Positions 46,531 through 53,472 of a stretch of 64,000 bases of DNA are shown piece by piece. Numbering within the stretch: the first letter of the stretch is position 1; each line of letters opens with the position of its first letter. The notes under the pieces were generated by a model. The model ran no database searches, was not told the DNA's origin, and was given only the letters and a program-made list of their open reading frames with translations. The DNA is taken from sequence record MT133560.1; one strand, written 5' to 3'. The position numbers and the translations under genes were made by a program.

Positions 46531-48411
46531 ATGGCTGTTAACGAAAACGAAATCGGCACCGTTCAAACTCAAGCTACTGCTCCTGCTCCGCAACCCACTG
46601 CACAGCGTCAAGCTCAACGTCCTACTGGCGCGCCTGGGTCTACTACTGGCATTAACCATCTAATGCGTCGCTCTGGTCGACTAGATGGCTCTGATGCTCG
46701 TTCAGCAGATGCCCTACAAGTATTCACTAAAGTAAAAGAAGAAGCAATCCGCCATCAGGACCTACCTGATGACTTCGATATCCATCGTTTCGATCGTGAT
46801 GCGCAACAAGTTGGTATGGCTGGTCTACTCATTGTTAAACTAGCTAAAGATATCAATGGTTCCATGAAGGCATTCGTTCGTACTCTAGTACTCGATAACC
46901 TACCTGGTACTCGCATCCGTCCCCGTACCCACAAAATCAACAATGGTCTAACCGACGACATCATTGAAGAGAAGGTACTACCGCGTGATGTATTCACTGC
47001 TCAATACTGGAGCAAGATCGGCGAGTTCCTACGGAACCGTTACAACATCCCTGGTCTAGAAGTACTATCTGCCGGTCCCCGTGCAGTGTATGCTGACTTC
47101 GACTTCAAAGATGAACTAGCTGTTAAGAACCTACTAGTTGAATCTGTTAACATCTGTGAAGATGCTATTGCACGTCGTAACAATGAGACTCCGTTCTCTA
47201 TTGCGACCCACATCAAAGCAGAAAACGAACAGCTTACCTGCAACCTAGACTACAATGGTATTCCGGTTAAAGATAGCTGTGGTAATCCGATCCGTTCTGA
47301 CATGGTCATCTCCACTAGCCGTGGTAAGAAAACCAACGTACCTGAGAACGAGTTCTATGATACCGATAGCCAGCTAAACCAAGTTAGTCTATTCGTAGAT
47401 CTACATTGGACTCCGACCACTGGCCAGCAACAAGGTATGTTTGGCGTAACTCTACCTGGTGCAGCTCTACCTCCGCAGTTCACTCCTTACATCGTTATCA
47501 CTGACGTTCGTAAGGCATCCTGGATCCAAGCATGGACTCTAGAAATGTGGCTGTTCGCGCTTGGTAACGCGTATCGTGCAACTGCATCTCAGGCATGGGC
47601 TCGTACTCTAATGCCGAAGATCGCTACTAGTAAGATGCGTGATATTGGTGCACTTGGTTATTACTCAGAGCTAGGTAAAGCGATTGAAACTCGCACCGAA
47701 GCATTCATGGCAGACGACAGCAACTTCGTAATGCTAATGAACAAGATGGTTAACCAGAACCCTGCATTCCAGATCGATATCGATCCAATGGGCGACAACT
47801 CAGCTATTGAGCAAGTCATCCTAGATGCAGCTGGTGGCGTAAACCAAGCTCGTGCAGTTAGCCTGATCTTCCAAGCTCTAACTAACCTATACGGCACTGA
47901 TTTCCGTCAGTTCTATAACCTAGCTGAAGCTGGTCCGATTATCTTTGACAACCATCATGAAGTAGACCTCGGTCACTACACTGATGAGCATGGCGAACTA
48001 AGCGACCGTCGTGATCTTGACGTTCTAGGTGCCATGAACATGTCTGAAGGTAATGACCAAGAGTGGAAGACCTGGTATGCTACTCAGGTAGGTAATGACC
48101 ACATTGTGCGTCGTATGAATAACAGTAAAGGCTTCGACAAGATGTACCTAGGTAACGTTACCTATACTGGTCGTGCTCGTCGTCTAACCTTTAACCCGAA
48201 ATTCATCACCGCAATGGATGCCGCAGCAGCAGCCGCTGGTGTAACTGTAACCATGGAAAACCTAATTACCAACTTCGGTCAACAGCGCTTCGCTGGTTAC
48301 ACCGGTATGGGTAACATGGCTGTTTCTGGTAGTGCACAAGTTGGTATGGCTGGCAGCATGGGTCAAACTTACGGCGCTCCTTCCTATAATGCACCGGGTA
48401 CCTGGTACTAA
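46531..48411 (+). CDS. chmA: chimallin, major phage-nucleus shell protein (gp54-like)
   Basis: 626 aa; sequence recalled as phiKZ chimallin; disordered termini; directly upstream of nvRNAP beta'. Confidence 0.93.
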
Positions 48412-48419
48412 TAGGAAAT

Positions 48420-48735
48420 ACCTCGGTAGATAGGGATGTTAAATAAGTAACATCCCGATTCTAATACTGCGACCCTGGTTCACTTCGGTGATAACGGTTA
48501 GGAGTAGGTTCCGTGAAGTAATCGACTAGTGGACTTAGTCTAGGTCGACCTATCACTACACGAGGATGATAGATCACTTAACCGAAAGGAGTTACTCAAA
48601 AGGTGACGTGTGATCAAAAACTACAATGGATGGTAAATGATACTAGTGCCGGTATGCTACAGAGAAGAGCGGAGGTTAAGCTTTGTAGATGACGCTAGGA
48701 TCGGGCCAGGCTCCGTTGGTGGTCCATTGTAAAAA
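48420..48735 (+). ncRNA. candidate structured non-coding RNA or structured 3' UTR
   Basis: no ORF; contiguous stems including UUCG and GAAA tetraloop hairpins and a long-range tacaatgga/tccattgta helix. Confidence 0.6.
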
Positions 48736-48737
48736 CT

Positions 48738-48780
48738 GATATAGCGGCTCCTTCGGGGGCCGCTTATATCTCCTTTTTTT
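48738..48780 (+). terminator. intrinsic terminator
   Basis: gatatagcggctcc-TTCG-ggggccgcttatatc followed by a T-tract. Confidence 0.9.
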
Positions 48781-48805
48781 GTTAATCGATAAATAGGAGT
48801 TTGGT

Positions 48806-49942
48806 ATGGGTCTTTATGCCAAAGTTGTTGATCATAATGAAGTTCATGATCAATTTACGGGTAAACGAATTTATGCCAATGATTACAATACGAGTAACTC
48901 AGATGAGAAAGAAGAATTTGATAGACATTTCTATTCTCATTTCCAAGATTCAGAAGCAATTGAAAGTAGTGTAAGCTGTGATTGTCGAGCAATCGAAGAC
49001 GCACATAAACTCGGAGTAATCTGTGATATTTGTAATACTCCAGTTGTCAATACTTCTAGCCGCCCTATCGAACCATCAATGTGGGTTCGTACACCAAAAC
49101 ATGTACGTAGCCTAATTAACCCACGTTTAATCATTATGCTAACCGGATATCTAGTAACTAAAGAATTCGATTTCTTAGCATATCTAACTGATACTTCTTA
49201 TCGATACGATGTAGAATCTATTGGTTCTAAGGAAACACGCAGGAAAGTAGATAGGCTACTGCATCGAGGATTTGAAAGAGGATTAAATCACTTCATTGAT
49301 AATTTCAATGAGATCTTCCAATTCCTACTAGATGCAAATATTATCTCTAATAATAAATCCGAATTCGCTCAATTCGTTGCTCAGAATAAAGATAAGTTAT
49401 TCCCTAAATATTTACCAGTTCCTTCTAAACTCTGTTTCGTAGCAGAATCAACCACATCTGGTACTTACTTAGATAAACCAATTGAAGCAGCAATTGATGC
49501 TACCTTAACCTTCGCTAGTATTGATGCATCATCTGTACCACTTAGTCCAATTAAAGCTCAGAATAGGACTATGCGAGGACTAAGACTATATGGCCAGTTC
49601 TACGAGATCTACGCAAAATCACGAATTGCTCAAAAGCCTGGTCTTGCTCGGCGTCACATGTTTGGTGCTCGTCTCAACGCTACGGCACGTGCAGTAATCA
49701 CTTCTATTAGTGACCCGCATGATTATGATGAACTACATATCCCTTGGGGGGTAGGTTGTCAATTATTAAAGTATCATCTAACCAATAAACTAAAAGCAAA
49801 GTTTAACATGACAACTCGTGAAGCATTCTCATTTGTATATGAGAATGTACTTCAATATAACCAAATCATTGCAGATCTATTTAAAGAGCTAATTGCAGAA
49901 GCAGCCCCTTATAAAGGGATGGGTTGTACTTTTCACCGAAAT
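48806..49942 (+). CDS. non-virion RNA polymerase beta' N-terminal subunit, exon 1 (gp55-like)
   Basis: Zn-binding CDC...CDIC; GLARRHMFGARLNATARAVIT resembles beta' GKRVDYSGRSVI; ends at HRN just before the PTL motif. Confidence 0.93.
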
Positions 49943-51186
49943 TAATCTATTAAGTTAAAGCGCTACAGATTCTGGGTGTGGTAACCAGGAATCTCTAATG
50001 AGGAATTATGAATGAAGAAATAAGATGGCGTAAAATACCTGGTTTCAATAATTACGAAGTCAGTGATCATGGTCAAGTTAGGAACCTTAAAGGCGAATTA
50101 ATCTCACAACACGAGAATAAGACAACTAAAGGTACTTACCTTACCGTTAACATCCACAATGATGACGGTATTAGAAAGATTCGTTATGTTCATCGTTTTG
50201 TGTGCATGGCGTTTCATGGGTTACCTGAAAACTTTAATGAGTTGGACGTTAACCACAAAGATACCATTAAGCATAATAATCATTACCTTAACCTAGAGTG
50301 GGAAACTCGTAGCGGTAATGTTAAGCATGCATTTATAACCGGTGCCAATAAACATGCACTCGCTGTTAAATGTACAAACATTCTGACTGGTGAAGTAAAT
50401 AACTTCATCTCGATGAAAGAAGTAGCCGAGTTCCTAGAGCTTGGTCACAATAAAGGGTTACATGTCGTATTGGGTCATTTAGTTAAACCATTCAGAGGTA
50501 AATATGTATTCGAAGTAAGTGGGGATTATCACCCACAGAAGCGTAAGAATGCAATTGAAGTTTATTGCATAGACTTCAAGACCAACACCTTTGGACGATA
50601 TGTAAACCTAACGCAGTTACAACTTAGAACCGGGTTAATTAAAGGGTCAGTGCAGGACATTTTAAAGAAACCAGATCTAAGATTATTCAACGGTGTTGTT
50701 ATCTGTAGGGTCGATGATAAGGAACGGCTATTCGAATACGTTTCTAACCTAACCCAAGAAATGGTTAACAAATCCATTGATGATTACAATAGATACAAAG
50801 CGCGTAGAGAGAAGCTACATACCACCTAAGCAATTAGTGTAGCGACTTAACTTAATATGGGTTTCCTTGTATCAGAAATGATACTCGACAAAACTTCTTG
50901 AATTGCTGGAACAACTCGTTAGGTCAGTTAGCTACAATAGTTCCGAAAGGTTCTATGAATGCTTAAGAATAACTGAATAGAGTCAATCAGCAGCTAAGAT
51001 CCTAACCCGAAAGGTATGGATAAAGTTCAACGACTAGTGCATTGGCACGTAGGGTCCAAGTGGACTCGAAGTGGGAAGCACCTTACTGGGTAAAGCCAAA
51101 GGTGAAGATATAGTCTCAACGTCTAGCGAGAGCTAGAGCTGCACGTAATGGTGCGGGTTAGCCTAACGAACTAACTGAAGATATTG
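49943..51186 (+). other. group I intron 1 (IA-like) with HNH ORF in the P1 loop
   Basis: P aattgctggaa 50901, Q aatcagcagc 50985, R gttcaacgacta 51025, S aagatatagtct 51105; exon ends in U and intron ends in G; IGS gtttc 50861-50865 pairs with exon gaaau. Confidence 0.92.
50008..50829 (+). CDS. intron-encoded HNH homing endonuclease (NUMOD4-HNH-NUMOD1-like)
   Basis: WRKIPGFNNYEVSDHGQVR, VHRFVCMAF, VNHKDTIKHNNHYLNLEW; GAGGA RBS. Confidence 0.92.
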   Translation: MNEEIRWRKIPGFNNYEVSDHGQVRNLKGELISQHENKTTKGTYLTVNIHNDDGIRKIRYVHRFVCMAFHGLPENFNELDVNHKDTIKHNNHYLNLEWETRSGNVKHAFITGANKHALAVKCTNILTGEVNNFISMKEVAEFLELGHNKGLHVVLGHLVKPFRGKYVFEVSGDYHPQKRKNAIEVYCIDFKTNTFGRYVNLTQLQLRTGLIKGSVQDILKKPDLRLFNGVVICRVDDKERLFEYVSNLTQEMVNKSIDDYNRYKARREKLHTT

Positions 51187-51312
51187 CCAACGCTTCAACG
51201 TGGATCTACGCAGCAGTTCTTTATTACTAAAGTAAAAGATGACATTAATGATAATTCTATCAGCATGTCAGTTTTATGCCTTAAGGCTCCAAACGCAGAT
51301 TTCGACGGAGAT
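51187..51312 (+). CDS. nvRNAP beta' subunit exon 2 (catalytic loop; absent from ORF track)
   Basis: manual translation PTLQRGSTQQFFITKVKDDINDNSISMSVLCLKAPNADFDGD; 126 nt, in frame with both flanking exons. Confidence 0.95.
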
Positions 51313-52836
51313 TTTAATTGGTCTCCTAACCTTCTTAATTGCTGGAACCTCCTTAGAGCCTAACTACCAAAGCAGATAGCGAAAGCTAAAATGTAACGGT
51401 TTGAAAAGTGTTAGGATTGGACAATCAGCAGCGAAGCTTCTACGTATTGCCGTGAGGCGAGATAGGAAGAACGTTCAACGACTATCGAAACCACTGCGAA
51501 AGCAGCCAAGGGAGTAGAGTAGGGCCAAGTGGTCCGAAATAGAAGGCTTCCCTCTGGGAAGAAGATATAGTCTCACCATCTAGTGAAAGCTAGAGCAGTT
51601 ACTTAATGTCGGGAGATATTAAGTGGACGGTACAGCAGCGACATGTCTTCCAATGGAGGATATGTGTTTATTTACAGTCGTATACCCAAATCGAGAGAAA
51701 TTGTGATTCCCGGTACATTCGGGCGTTATAGACTGACTCTGGATGGGTTAGTCTATGATCGATTTTTGGATAAATTGATAGATCCAATAAACCGACATTA
51801 CGTTCTTGAATTACCATGGCATAGACTACCCATTCATGTTACTAAGTTGATAGCAGTGTGTTTTAAAGGCTGGCATGCGCCATTAGAGTTTGTTAGCCGC
51901 TGCGAAATATTGTTTTCTGATGGAGATGAAGACAATATTCATCCTAGAAACTTGATTTGGAAATTCCCGGAAGAAGGATTGGAGGTTCCCACCTTCCCAG
52001 GATATTATTTCATCCCTAGTTTTACCTGCTATGCAATCAATGATGAACTCAAGGTCATAAGTCTTTTTGAAGGTTCAGCTAAATTAACAAGTTTGGCGAC
52101 AACTGGATACAGAGATCTTGGATTGCGTCGAGATGATGGCACCTATGTAGGAACGAATTTACACCGTGTAGCTGCACTGACATTTATTGAATACGATAAC
52201 ACCATCAATGAGAAAGTGGTCAACCACATAGATGGTGATCGTGACAATACAGTACCCGATAACCTAGAATGGGTAACCCAGAGTGAAAATGTGTTGCATG
52301 GAAATGCAATCAAAACCGGTTATATTGGATCAGCAAAGAATACCGCGATCATGAGAATGTTGAAAAATCGCGGAATTAACACGGACGGAATTGTTCTTGA
52401 GCACGACGGTATTGAGATAAAGGATATCGTTACGGGTGAAATCAGGAAATATGACTCGCAAAAGAAAGCAAGTGAGGCGATAGGGGTTAGTGTAGGTACG
52501 ATTTCTTTGAAAGTTAGCGGACATGCAATTTATCCAGTCATTATGGATAGGTACATTGTACGTCGGGTTGGTTCAGAATGGCCAACCTGGGATGAATCCA
52601 TTGAGTATAGTCAGGCTAAAAATAAGACCACACTTGTGAAAAATGTGGAAACTGGCGAGATTTTGAAATACAAATCAGCCAAGCAGGCATATCTCGATCT
52701 TGGATTATCAAAGAAAGTAGTAACTAGCAAACTCAAAAAGAAAGACCGTCGACCAATTAATGGGTTCATTTTTAAATATGAAAATGACCCAGATGATTTT
52801 TAGACATGTCGCTGACGATGCTGTATGAAGATAGTG
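51313..52836 (+). other. group I intron 2 (IA-like) with HNH ORF in the P9 region
   Basis: P 51337, Q 51423, R 51473, S 51562; IGS gtctcc 51321-51326 pairs with exon ggagau; terminal G at 52836. Confidence 0.93.
51643..52803 (+). CDS. intron-encoded HNH homing endonuclease (gp56-like)
   Basis: NLHRVAALTF, VVNHIDGDRDNTVPDNLEWVTQSEN; degenerate N-terminal HNH copy; two NUMOD1-like repeats. Confidence 0.92.
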   Translation: MSSNGGYVFIYSRIPKSREIVIPGTFGRYRLTLDGLVYDRFLDKLIDPINRHYVLELPWHRLPIHVTKLIAVCFKGWHAPLEFVSRCEILFSDGDEDNIHPRNLIWKFPEEGLEVPTFPGYYFIPSFTCYAINDELKVISLFEGSAKLTSLATTGYRDLGLRRDDGTYVGTNLHRVAALTFIEYDNTINEKVVNHIDGDRDNTVPDNLEWVTQSENVLHGNAIKTGYIGSAKNTAIMRMLKNRGINTDGIVLEHDGIEIKDIVTGEIRKYDSQKKASEAIGVSVGTISLKVSGHAIYPVIMDRYIVRRVGSEWPTWDESIEYSQAKNKTTLVKNVETGEILKYKSAKQAYLDLGLSKKVVTSKLKKKDRRPINGFIFKYENDPDDF

Positions 52837-53040
52837 CAACTTAATTTAACATTAATGCCCGATGTGTATTTAACCAAAGCAACTGAACGCATCGCGCCAC
52901 ATACGTGGGTTCTATCTATTGATGAACCGCATGAAATCTCAGGAAACCTTGAGCTACAAGGTCCTGTTGTAGAAACAATCATTAATTGGGCGCATGAGAA
53001 ATATTTACCACCACTAGAAGAGTGGTTAAAAGCAAAATAA
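52837..53040 (+). CDS. nvRNAP beta' subunit exon 3 (gp56.1-like)
   Basis: QLNLTLMPD completes NADFDGD-Q; spliced ORF is 1467 nt, 488 aa. Confidence 0.92.
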   Translation, partial: QLNLTLMPDVYLTKATERIAPHTWVLSIDEPHEISGNLELQGPVVETIINWAHEKYLPPLEEWLKAK

Positions 53041-53043
53041 ATT

Positions 53044-53075
53044 AATAGGGGAGTCTAACTCCCCTATTATTTCTT
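53044..53075 (+). terminator. intrinsic terminator
   Basis: aataggggagt-cta-actcccctatt. Confidence 0.85.
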
Positions 53076-53088
53076 TGAGGTTAGTAAT

Positions 53089-53472
53089 ATGCGCGATCTA
53101 GTTATTTATTGGAAAAAGTATGATGGTTACTATATACGAGATGAGCATGGTGAACATCCTGTAACTTTCCAATTATCAGAAATTAATTGGAATTTCACCG
53201 GAGCTTATGAATACGGTGGTTCTGAATTGATTGATGGTCATTTAAGATTTGGTATAGATTTCAAAATACGAAATATTAAGTGGTGCATTAGGTTTAACCT
53301 AGACGGTAAGTTTACTTTTTACAATATGTCAAATAATGATCGGGATGATACCCTTGTAATTCCAGCTACTTCAAAATTTGCACAATTCTTTAAAAAGACA
53401 GGTAAACATGTAATTACTAATGAAGTTATCACTATCCCAATTAATTGCTCTTTTGATAAGCAAATTTATTAA
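53089..53472 (+). CDS. hypothetical protein
   Basis: 127-aa ORF with GAGG RBS. Confidence 0.75.
   Translation: MRDLVIYWKKYDGYYIRDEHGEHPVTFQLSEINWNFTGAYEYGGSELIDGHLRFGIDFKIRNIKWCIRFNLDGKFTFYNMSNNDRDDTLVIPATSKFAQFFKKTGKHVITNEVITIPINCSFDKQIY

Follow-up and report, generated by a model that had tools for sequence, protein, structure and literature searches.

Two endonuclease-bearing group I introns flank the catalytic-loop exon of the non-virion RNA polymerase beta' gene in Pseudomonas phage fnug

The locus described here lies in the left 64 kb of the genome of Pseudomonas phage fnug (MT133560.1; Phikzvirus, phiKZ species), and this whole stretch of 64,000 nucleotides (nt) is referred to as the window. 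Over 48400-53100 the window matched MT133560.1 with 100% identity and without any offset in coordinates. Fnug is a viable lytic isolate on PAO1 and was obtained from Danish wastewater (GenBank record). Positions 48806-53040 hold a single gene, the orthologue of phiKZ gp55, in the counterpart of the phiKZ gene 54-57 neighbourhood; this gene and all other features given below are on the plus strand. Its predicted product is a subunit of the non-virion RNA polymerase (nvRNAP), and its coding sequence is divided into three exons by two group I introns. Exon 1 (48806-49942) has 379 codons and ends in ...FHRN, with the TAA stop of the intron directly after it. Exon 2 (51187-51312; 126 nt, 42 codons) reads PTLQRGS...LKAPNADFDGD and carries the Mg-binding aspartate triad of beta'. 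Exon 3 (52837-53040), the counterpart of phiKZ 'gp56.1', has 67 codons and a stop and reads QLNLTLMPDV...EEWLKAK. Intron 1 (49943-51186, 1244 nt) is inserted after HRN and intron 2 (51313-52836, 1524 nt) after NADFDGD. These positions are named sites A and C; a third, site B, after APN, is occupied in phiKZ, and all three sites fall within 126 bp.

In translation, all three exons were open and in frame and gave a 1467-nt reading frame of 488 amino acids (aa; 379 + 42 + 67), the joined protein being ...FHRN/PTLQRGS...APNADFDGD/QLNLTL... (slashes mark junctions throughout). The exons matched successive parts of PHROG 2987 ('RNA polymerase beta subunit', 478 positions), at positions 1-380 (E 8e-145), 381-422 (1.7e-19) and 423-477, and of chain A of PDB entry 7OGP ('PHIKZ055, PHIKZ056.1'), at residues 21-399 (E 1e-261), 400-441 and 442-508. 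Exons 2 and 3 were each 100% identical to 7OGP_A and the exon-1 protein was identical or nearly so; residues 21-508 were covered without gap or overlap, and no residue was lost or doubled at the junctions. This colinearity fixes the splice sites independently of the RNA arguments. The summed mass of the joined protein was computed as 55.7 kDa; gp55 in nvRNAP purified from phiKZ-infected cells was 56 kDa (PMC4666361), and the annotated 420-aa phiKZ gp55 would weigh about 48 kDa. The predicted 488-aa product is the N-terminal beta' subunit of the jumbo-phage nvRNAP, which transcribes all non-early phiKZ genes (PMC8287921). The catalytic NADFDGD loop of the double-psi beta-barrel closes exon 2 and is the only NADFDGD in the gene. 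Exon 2 itself lacks both a start codon and a ribosome-binding site, and its match to Pfam RNA_pol_Rpb1_2 (profile positions 107-144) was weak, at 18.5 bits and below the cut-off.

Intron 1 gave a full-model match (1-253) to Rfam RF00028 at 50843-51138 (87.5 bits, E 5.8e-21; gathering score 50 bits). The last base of exon 1 is U49942 and the terminal base of the intron is G51186. The internal guide sequence, UGGGUUUC (50858-50865), pairs with GAAAU/CCA: GUUUC forms P1 with the exon-1 bases GAAAU, including a U49942-G50861 wobble, and UGG forms P10 with the exon-2 bases CCA. Against the ligated junction it made eight contiguous pairs (-9.8 kcal/mol, duplex computation). The open reading frame (ORF) of the intron, ORF-A, is looped out of an extended P1, whose 5' strands (49948-49967) pair as 49948-49958 with 50847-50857 and as 49961-49967 with 50838-50844; these 11-bp and 7-bp helices stack on P1 and close the ORF-A loop (-23.5 kcal/mol in RNAfold, with the ORF replaced by GAAA). 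The catalytic core (50901-51136) comprises P (50901-50912), Q (50985-50994), R (51025-51036), S (51105-51115) and a P9 hairpin (51123-51136), and its P7 is GACUA/UAGUC.

In intron 2 the ribozyme comes first and the ORF, ORF-C, lies in the P9.2 loop. The full-model RF00028 match (1-253) spans 51291-51595 (74.8 bits, E 3.7e-17), U51312 is the last base of exon 2 and G52836 the last of the intron. As guide sequence, UUGGUCUCC (51318-51326) is complementary to GGAGAU/CAA: GUCUCC forms P1 with GGAGAU of exon 2, with a U51312-G51321 wobble, and UUG forms P10 with CAA of exon 3. The P1 hairpin folds, and the guide made nine contiguous pairs with the ligated junction (-13.5 kcal/mol, duplex computation). 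The core (51337-51593) is made up of P (51337-51348), Q (51423-51432), R (51473-51484), S (51562-51572) and a P9 hairpin (51580-51593). The predicted spliced junctions are ...CACCGAAAT/CCAACG... and ...GGAGAT/CAACTT..., and the boundaries of both introns are unambiguous, with different bases following the 5' and 3' splice sites. Three independent tests agree on these exact junctions: colinearity with the PHROG profile, colinearity with 7OGP_A, and pairing of the guides across the ligated exons.

ORF-C is closed off by a perfect 12-bp stem between CAGCGACAUGUC (51636-51647) and GACAUGUCGCUG (52803-52814), which buries the ORF-C start codon (51643-51645) in its 5' strand and overlaps the TAG stop of ORF-C with its 3' strand; the fold of the P9 domain had a free energy of -47.9 kcal/mol. 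The palindromic 8-mer GACATGTC occurs in each strand of the stem (51640-51647 and 52803-52810) and brackets ORF-C. A single copy is found at this place in the ORF-less intron of the Pawinskivirus phage PS119XW, so the endonuclease gene looks like a discrete cassette inside intron C.

An alignment was made of six ribozymes of this gene from different phages, namely one from intron A, one from A' (a different ribozyme at site A in phage Churi) and two each from B and C. Through two-sided changes, 30 of the 56 consensus pairs stayed paired, including all six pairs of P3 and most of P6 and P8, and compensatory changes were seen in P3, P5, P6, P8 and P9 across the A, A', B and C introns. An earlier note on this DNA had proposed two group I introns with the boundaries given above, and both scored well over the Rfam threshold. 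Its joined 488-aa subunit proved to be in frame and colinear with PHROG 2987 and 7OGP_A, and the P/Q/R/S motifs, the U at the 5' exon ends, the terminal G and the guide and P10 pairings that it described were all present at the exact junctions. It had also placed the catalytic NADFDGD loop on a hidden 126-nt exon overlooked by gene callers, and MT133560 indeed has no coding sequence there.

ORF-A (50008-50829; 822 nt, 273 aa) is preceded by a GAGGA Shine-Dalgarno sequence (50000-50004) and encodes a predicted HNH homing endonuclease with the Pfam domains NUMOD4 (PF07463, 38.6 bits, 1.3e-9) and HNH_3 (PF13392, 31.8 bits, 1.1e-7), both above the cut-offs. It matched the HNH endonucleases of PHROG 59 (2.9e-39) and I-HmuI (PDB 1U3E; 2.2e-6, with the HNH histidine aligned), and was 34% identical to phiKZ gp56. 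ORF-C (51643-52803; 1161 nt, 386 aa), likewise a predicted HNH homing endonuclease, has HNH_3 (PF13392, 41.5 bits, 1e-10), NUMOD1 (PF07453, 36.9 bits, 4e-9) and the NUMOD-like domain of I-HmuI (PF22083, 29.2 bits, 7e-7), all above the cut-offs. It matched I-HmuI (1U3E) at 1.9e-9 over 168 residues, again with the HNH histidine aligned, and was 26% identical to gp56 and 26% to ORF-A. The aligned motifs are '..vNHKD..NLEWeT..N' in ORF-A, '..vNHIDGDRDN..NLEWVTQSEN' in ORF-C and '..vDHKDGNKDN..NLRWVTQKIN' in I-HmuI, and we take the aligned His and Asn residues to be the catalytic ones of I-HmuI 1U3E. The N-terminal approximately 125 aa of ORF-C (51643-52020) resemble a second NUMOD4/HNH-like module without the catalytic His, seen as a weak second BLAST segment against gp56, and may represent a tandem duplicate that has degenerated.

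In GenBank record MT133560, exons 1 and 3 were entered as separate genes and no feature covers exon 2. Exon 1 is fnug_67, 'hypothetical protein', and exon 3 is fnug_70, 'non-virion RNAP subunit beta'', whose annotated start (ATG 52825) is 12 nt inside intron 2. ORF-C is fnug_69 and was started at 51703, 60 nt downstream of the first in-frame ATG (51643); a deletion derivative of the intron in phage KEN49 retains an ATG at the position matching 51643. The catalytic exon was likewise missed by the annotation in KTN4, OMKO1 and the other genomes examined.

Presence and absence of introns were mapped against phiKZ and its relatives, as the earlier note had suggested, which yielded the three insertion sites and placed fnug at A and C. 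Intron lengths at each site were confirmed with Rfam, the A, B and C introns scoring 74-90 bits in eight other genomes. Sites A and C are also occupied in OMKO1 (ON631220.1; A 1250 nt, C 1524 nt), where B is empty and ORF-C (L008 3572-4432) is broken and reduced to a 286-aa ORF. KTN4 has A (1244 nt) and B (1372 nt) without C, and BLAST gave the same occupancy for ANB1. SL2 has A (1244 nt) and an ORF-deleted B (481 nt), and C is empty. Only B is found in phiKZ (1372 nt) and in 30-1 (480 nt, ORF deleted), and only C in PA7 (NC_042060; 1524 nt). Churi (OM718002.1) carries A', with a different HNH gene, and an ORF-deleted B, and has no C. All three sites are filled in KEN49 (vB_Pae3705-KEN49, PP456877.1), by an ORF-less A (350 nt), a B whose ORF has a nonsense codon (1373 nt) and an ORF-deleted C (388 nt). 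Among 55 matching database records, B-type sequence occurred in about 40, A-type in seven genomes and KEN49, and C-type in five Phikzvirus genomes and KEN49. Closely related viable phages thus hold zero, one, two or three of the introns, and fnug was the sole genome examined in the database with full-length endonuclease ORFs at two sites of the gene.

The copies of each intron were highly similar. Intron A was 98.5-100% identical in KTN4 (2016), ANB1, SL2, OMKO1 and fMGyn-Pae01, and the ORF-less 350-nt copy in KEN49 was 97.7% identical to that of fnug (Rfam, 89.1 bits). Intron C was 99.9-100% identical in PA7, W10-2, Brmt and OMKO1, and 96.7% in its ORF-less KEN49 form. The three introns of the KEN49 gene (L004 1845-4081) scored 89.1, 76.1 and 76.1 bits, and all three endonuclease ORFs are deleted or broken. 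Between its introns B and C remains an 18-nt micro-exon, GCTGATTTTGACGGAGAT (L004:3676-3693), coding for ADFDGD, which was seen in one genome where an assembly error is possible. A' of Churi (L011 1744-2939; 89.6 bits) sits exactly at site A and has the guide AUGGUUUCC, as in intron 1, with a shorter P5 region, so at least two intron lineages use site A. An assembly artefact as the source of the fnug arrangement was ruled out: OMKO1 independently has A and C, and each intron turns up again in several genomes that were sequenced independently. A scan of IMG/VR with the intron-C 5' junction pattern returned PA7 itself only. One IMG/VR contig with the intron-A guide/P2 pattern was rejected as a chance match, having no Rfam intron and an unrelated context. 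Further members of the intron family are probably present in phiKZ NC_004629.1 (186376-186509) and in HPP-Temi PP968062.1 (235640-235714 and 119741-119852).

The earlier note had placed the phiKZ intron after NADFDGD. It lies instead between APN and ADFDGD, at site B (...GCG CCT AAT/intron/GCT GAT TTT GAC GGC GAT CAA TTG...), with 108 nt of coding sequence between it and the position of fnug intron 1 upstream, and 18 nt between it and that of fnug intron 2 downstream. A boundary shifted by 1 nt (AATG/...ACGG/) would give the same mRNA but places G instead of U before the 5' splice site, and AAU/ was preferred. Fnug lacks this gp56 intron, the exon bases at site B being CCA AAC GCA, compared with CCT AAT/GCT in phiKZ. 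The suggestion that the upstream intron is an extra one beside that of phiKZ was therefore abandoned, as neither fnug intron is the phiKZ one. The novelty proposed for intron 1 stood insofar as no description or annotation of it was found; it is not unique to fnug, with copies in KTN4, ANB1, SL2, OMKO1 and fMGyn-Pae01 and an ORF-less one in KEN49.

Several features of this distribution indicate mobility. Occupancy of the three sites is patchy among genomes that are otherwise about 99% identical, and ORFs have decayed by deletion or nonsense mutation in SL2, 30-1, Churi, KEN49 and OMKO1. Occupied and empty alleles do not differ in the sequence flanking site A, which leaves phiKZ and PA7 with an intact candidate homing site for intron A. 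An ORF-less intron C of 362 nt is found at the same codon in PS119XW (NC_070882.1, L007 3501-3862); it is 91.7% identical to that of fnug, while the exons are only 67%, 75% and 74% identical, which points to horizontal transfer between the genera Phikzvirus and Pawinskivirus. Phage phiLBG22 gave the same BLAST match as PS119XW.

Around sites B and C the exons fall into two types, AAA GCG CCT AAT/GCT GAY TTT GAC GGC GAT CAA TTG AAT CTT (B-type) and AAG GCT CCA AAC GCA GAT TTC GAC GGA GAT/CAA CTT AAT TTA (C-type). Synonymous differences cluster near these sites, with at least eight in about 40 nt, and P1 of the intron-C guide requires GGA, not GGC. Between fnug and phiKZ, exon 3 is 88.2% identical without any amino-acid change and exon 1 is 98.8% identical. 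The synonymous cluster and the divergence of exon 3 look like co-conversion tracts and target-site variation at homing sites. KEN49, with both endonuclease genes dead, was the only phage to combine introns B and C, in a set of genomes that are closely related and not independent. The population pattern is typical of homing, which would itself be the process behind it.

The gene for chimallin, the nuclear shell protein (46531-48411; Pfam PF25677, 1121 bits), lies directly upstream of the beta' gene, and this order is kept in phiKZ, KTN4, PA7, SL2, Churi, KEN49 and PS119XW. The 394-nt non-coding stretch between the two genes (48412-48790) folded much better than shuffled sequences (z -4.1; 0 of 100 shuffles equally stable) and matched no Rfam family at the gathering score. 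It has a strong terminator hairpin with a T-run at its end, near 48744-48790, and the spacing is equal in phiKZ. Just 3' of the beta' gene, at 53047-53076, a terminator-like hairpin, AGGGGAG-UCUAA-CUCCCCU followed by a U-rich run, was read from the sequence; it is also present in phiKZ and KEN49.

Taken together, the locus is very probably a gene invaded by two group I introns, each bearing a homing endonuclease, so that two autocatalytic splicings are required before the catalytic half of beta' can be made. The sequence anatomy, the family matches, the colinearity of the protein, the covariation of the ribozymes and the population pattern are observations; we infer splicing, the activity and specificity of the endonucleases and any effect on fitness. 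After transcription, each ribozyme would fold and its guide would pair with the last five or six exon bases, with the U-G wobble at U49942 or U51312. External guanosine would attack the 5' splice site, and the freed exon would then attack after the terminal G (G51186, G52836), the 3-bp P10 holding the next exon during ligation. Both splicings would produce the 1467-nt frame and the 488-aa, 55.7-kDa protein. Without splicing, the TAA at the start of intron 1 would end translation and leave a product that lacks the catalytic loop; nvRNAP being indispensable, both introns must splice in vivo. By analogy with I-HmuI and with gp210, an intron endonuclease of PhiPA3, the endonucleases would nick intron-less alleles of co-infecting relatives, and repair would then transfer the intron, along with adjacent exon sequence, to the recipient (homing).

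A number of points weigh against this account. Splicing in fnug is predicted from the DNA sequence, and for the phage group the support for splicing in vivo is indirect: native gp55 has a size that fits the joined product, and the catalytic loop is needed. Full-length ONT-cappable-seq of phiKZ gave no evidence of splicing for the predicted introns under its conditions (PMC10914365). P1 of intron 1 has to form across an ORF of 822 nt, and P10 is only 3 bp in both introns. The start of ORF-C is uncertain: 51643 is buried in the stem and lacks a clear Shine-Dalgarno sequence, an in-frame GTG (51664) follows GGAGGA, and GenBank uses 51703. Both fnug ORFs are I-HmuI-family HNH endonucleases by their domains, and their activity and target sites are predicted. 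As to the transcriptome result, the phiKZ intron surveyed is the site-B intron, which differs from both fnug introns; counter to that result, phiKZ gp55 too has its catalytic loop beyond the intron, and the size of the native subunit is the one expected after splicing.

Part of the evidence could also be read as introns that splice while at least one endonuclease is inactive or without a target, so that they are fixed passengers on the way to ORF loss and do not home actively. ORF decay at all three sites agrees with this (the B deletions in SL2, 30-1 and Churi, the KEN49 nonsense codon, the broken ORF-C of OMKO1 and the ORF-less A and C of KEN49), as does the position of the ORF-C start codon inside a 12-bp stem. 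However, the fnug ORFs are full length (273 and 386 aa) and above the Pfam cut-offs, with the His aligned with the catalytic His of I-HmuI. Recent spread is suggested by ORF-A, with 99.9-100% identity between KTN4, ANB1 and fnug, and by ORF-C, with 100% identity in PA7 and W10-2; targets exist, the site-A flanks being alike in occupied and empty alleles. Passenger status is considered unlikely for fnug.

It is rather improbable that the double interruption is a regulatory gate on nvRNAP, requiring two GTP-dependent splicings with transcription and translation separated, or that the endonucleases serve as weapons against co-infecting relatives. The PhiPA3 protein gp210, an HNH endonuclease of an intron in an RNA polymerase gene, does give a competitive advantage over phiKZ (PMC11620839; PMC12908238), all three sites fall where this essential early gene is most conserved, and the B and C haplotypes seem to exclude each other unless both ORFs are dead. 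Against a gate, nothing in the sequence requires regulation, and related viable phages have from zero to three introns, so none is needed for the gene to work. That the gene is a pseudogene or a set of separate fragments, with introns as splicing-dead relics and polymerase function supplied from elsewhere, was rejected as extremely improbable: GenBank annotates fragments only and one transcriptome study did not detect splicing of the phiKZ gp56 intron (PMC10914365), but the exons are intact and encode a protein 100% or nearly identical to the functional phiKZ subunit, the only NADFDGD is on an exon that lacks a start codon and ribosome-binding site, the ribozyme cores score far above the threshold with compensatory changes and guides that match the junctions, and fnug is viable and lytic on PAO1 in a group where nvRNAP transcribes all non-early genes of phiKZ (PMC8287921).

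The reading of a beta' gene invaded by two spliced, endonuclease-bearing introns can be set beside known systems. One of these is the phiKZ gp56 intron, which like those of fnug belongs to group I and has an I-HmuI-like HNH ORF, in the same gene and for the same mature protein (7OGP chain A). It resembles fnug intron 1 in that its P1 loop holds the ORF, and over about 110 nt of the 3' ribozyme domain the identity is about 84%. It differs in its site (B), its guide sequence and its ribozyme, which is 60-64% identical to either fnug intron. The group I/HNH introns of phiKZ gp56, gp72 and gp179, in RNA polymerase genes, were predicted in 2002 by Mesyanzhinov et al., as cited in PMC10914365, and those of gp72 and gp179 also appear in PMC12676376. 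The PhiPA3 gp210 intron (Birkholz et al. 2024, PMC11620839) likewise combines a group I ribozyme and an HNH endonuclease beside conserved catalytic aspartates of a multisubunit RNA polymerase gene of a jumbo phage, and is polymorphic, with relatives lacking it. It is, however, a single intron in the virion RNA polymerase beta subunit of a phage of another genus, and its role in competition was shown by experiment.

The introns of the SPO1 and SP82 DNA polymerase genes (I-HmuI, I-HmuII) share the endonuclease family with those of fnug; related phages have alternative introns or endonucleases at one essential polymerase locus, and flanking markers are excluded (Goodrich-Blair and Shub 1996; Landthaler et al. 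2004, as cited in PMC12908238). There, the introns compete for a single site in a DNA polymerase gene, whereas the phiKZ-like phages have three sites in 126 bp of an RNA polymerase gene, of which up to three are filled. The td, nrdB and nrdD introns of T4, multi-intron essential phage genes, short internal exons and the occurrence of ORF-containing and ORF-less forms side by side are established background. In Staphylococcus phage Twort, orf142 reportedly has three introns and nrdE two (PMC113830, as cited in PMC12908238). The multi-intron genes of Twort and T4 differ from that of fnug in host gene and phage lineage.

A literature search found no paper or annotation describing the site-A and site-C introns, the three-site polymorphism, the KEN49 micro-exon or the cross-genus copy. 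The only remark in the KTN4 paper is that the genomes differ in predicted HNH endonucleases, and introns in gp55 were unmentioned in the reviews and nvRNAP structure papers searched. The fnug introns are previously undescribed, yet group I introns with HNH endonucleases in phage polymerase genes are textbook knowledge, and the finding is an incremental extension with no new principle.

The essential nvRNAP beta' gene has been deposited as two or three 'hypothetical' fragments without its catalytic exon in fnug, OMKO1, KTN4 and relatives, which are studied as therapeutic or model phages. With such fragmentary annotation, pangenome, essentiality and protein-family analyses will count the gene as broken or split.

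Beyond the double invasion of the fnug gene, a wider proposal is made tentatively and with somewhat less than even confidence: the 126-bp catalytic-loop stretch may be an arena of competition for three sites between four or more intron lineages (A, A', B and C) of co-infecting phiKZ-like phages, with B and C as mutually excluding haplotypes and fnug as a double 'driver' against phiKZ-type relatives in mixed infections. If true, fnug would be able to convert or damage the nvRNAP gene of its relatives, a natural within-species version of the interference by PhiPA3 gp210. The phiKZ-like phages are a model for intron endonucleases as weapons between co-infecting viruses (Birkholz 2024), a model that draws on one intron. 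A further question posed by the gene is how correct splicing by two or three ribozymes is achieved around exons as short as 126 or 18 nt, with translation physically apart from transcription. The natural polymorphism amounts to a set of nearly isogenic strains in which homing, marker exclusion, intron competition and the import of endonucleases into the phage nucleus may be studied.

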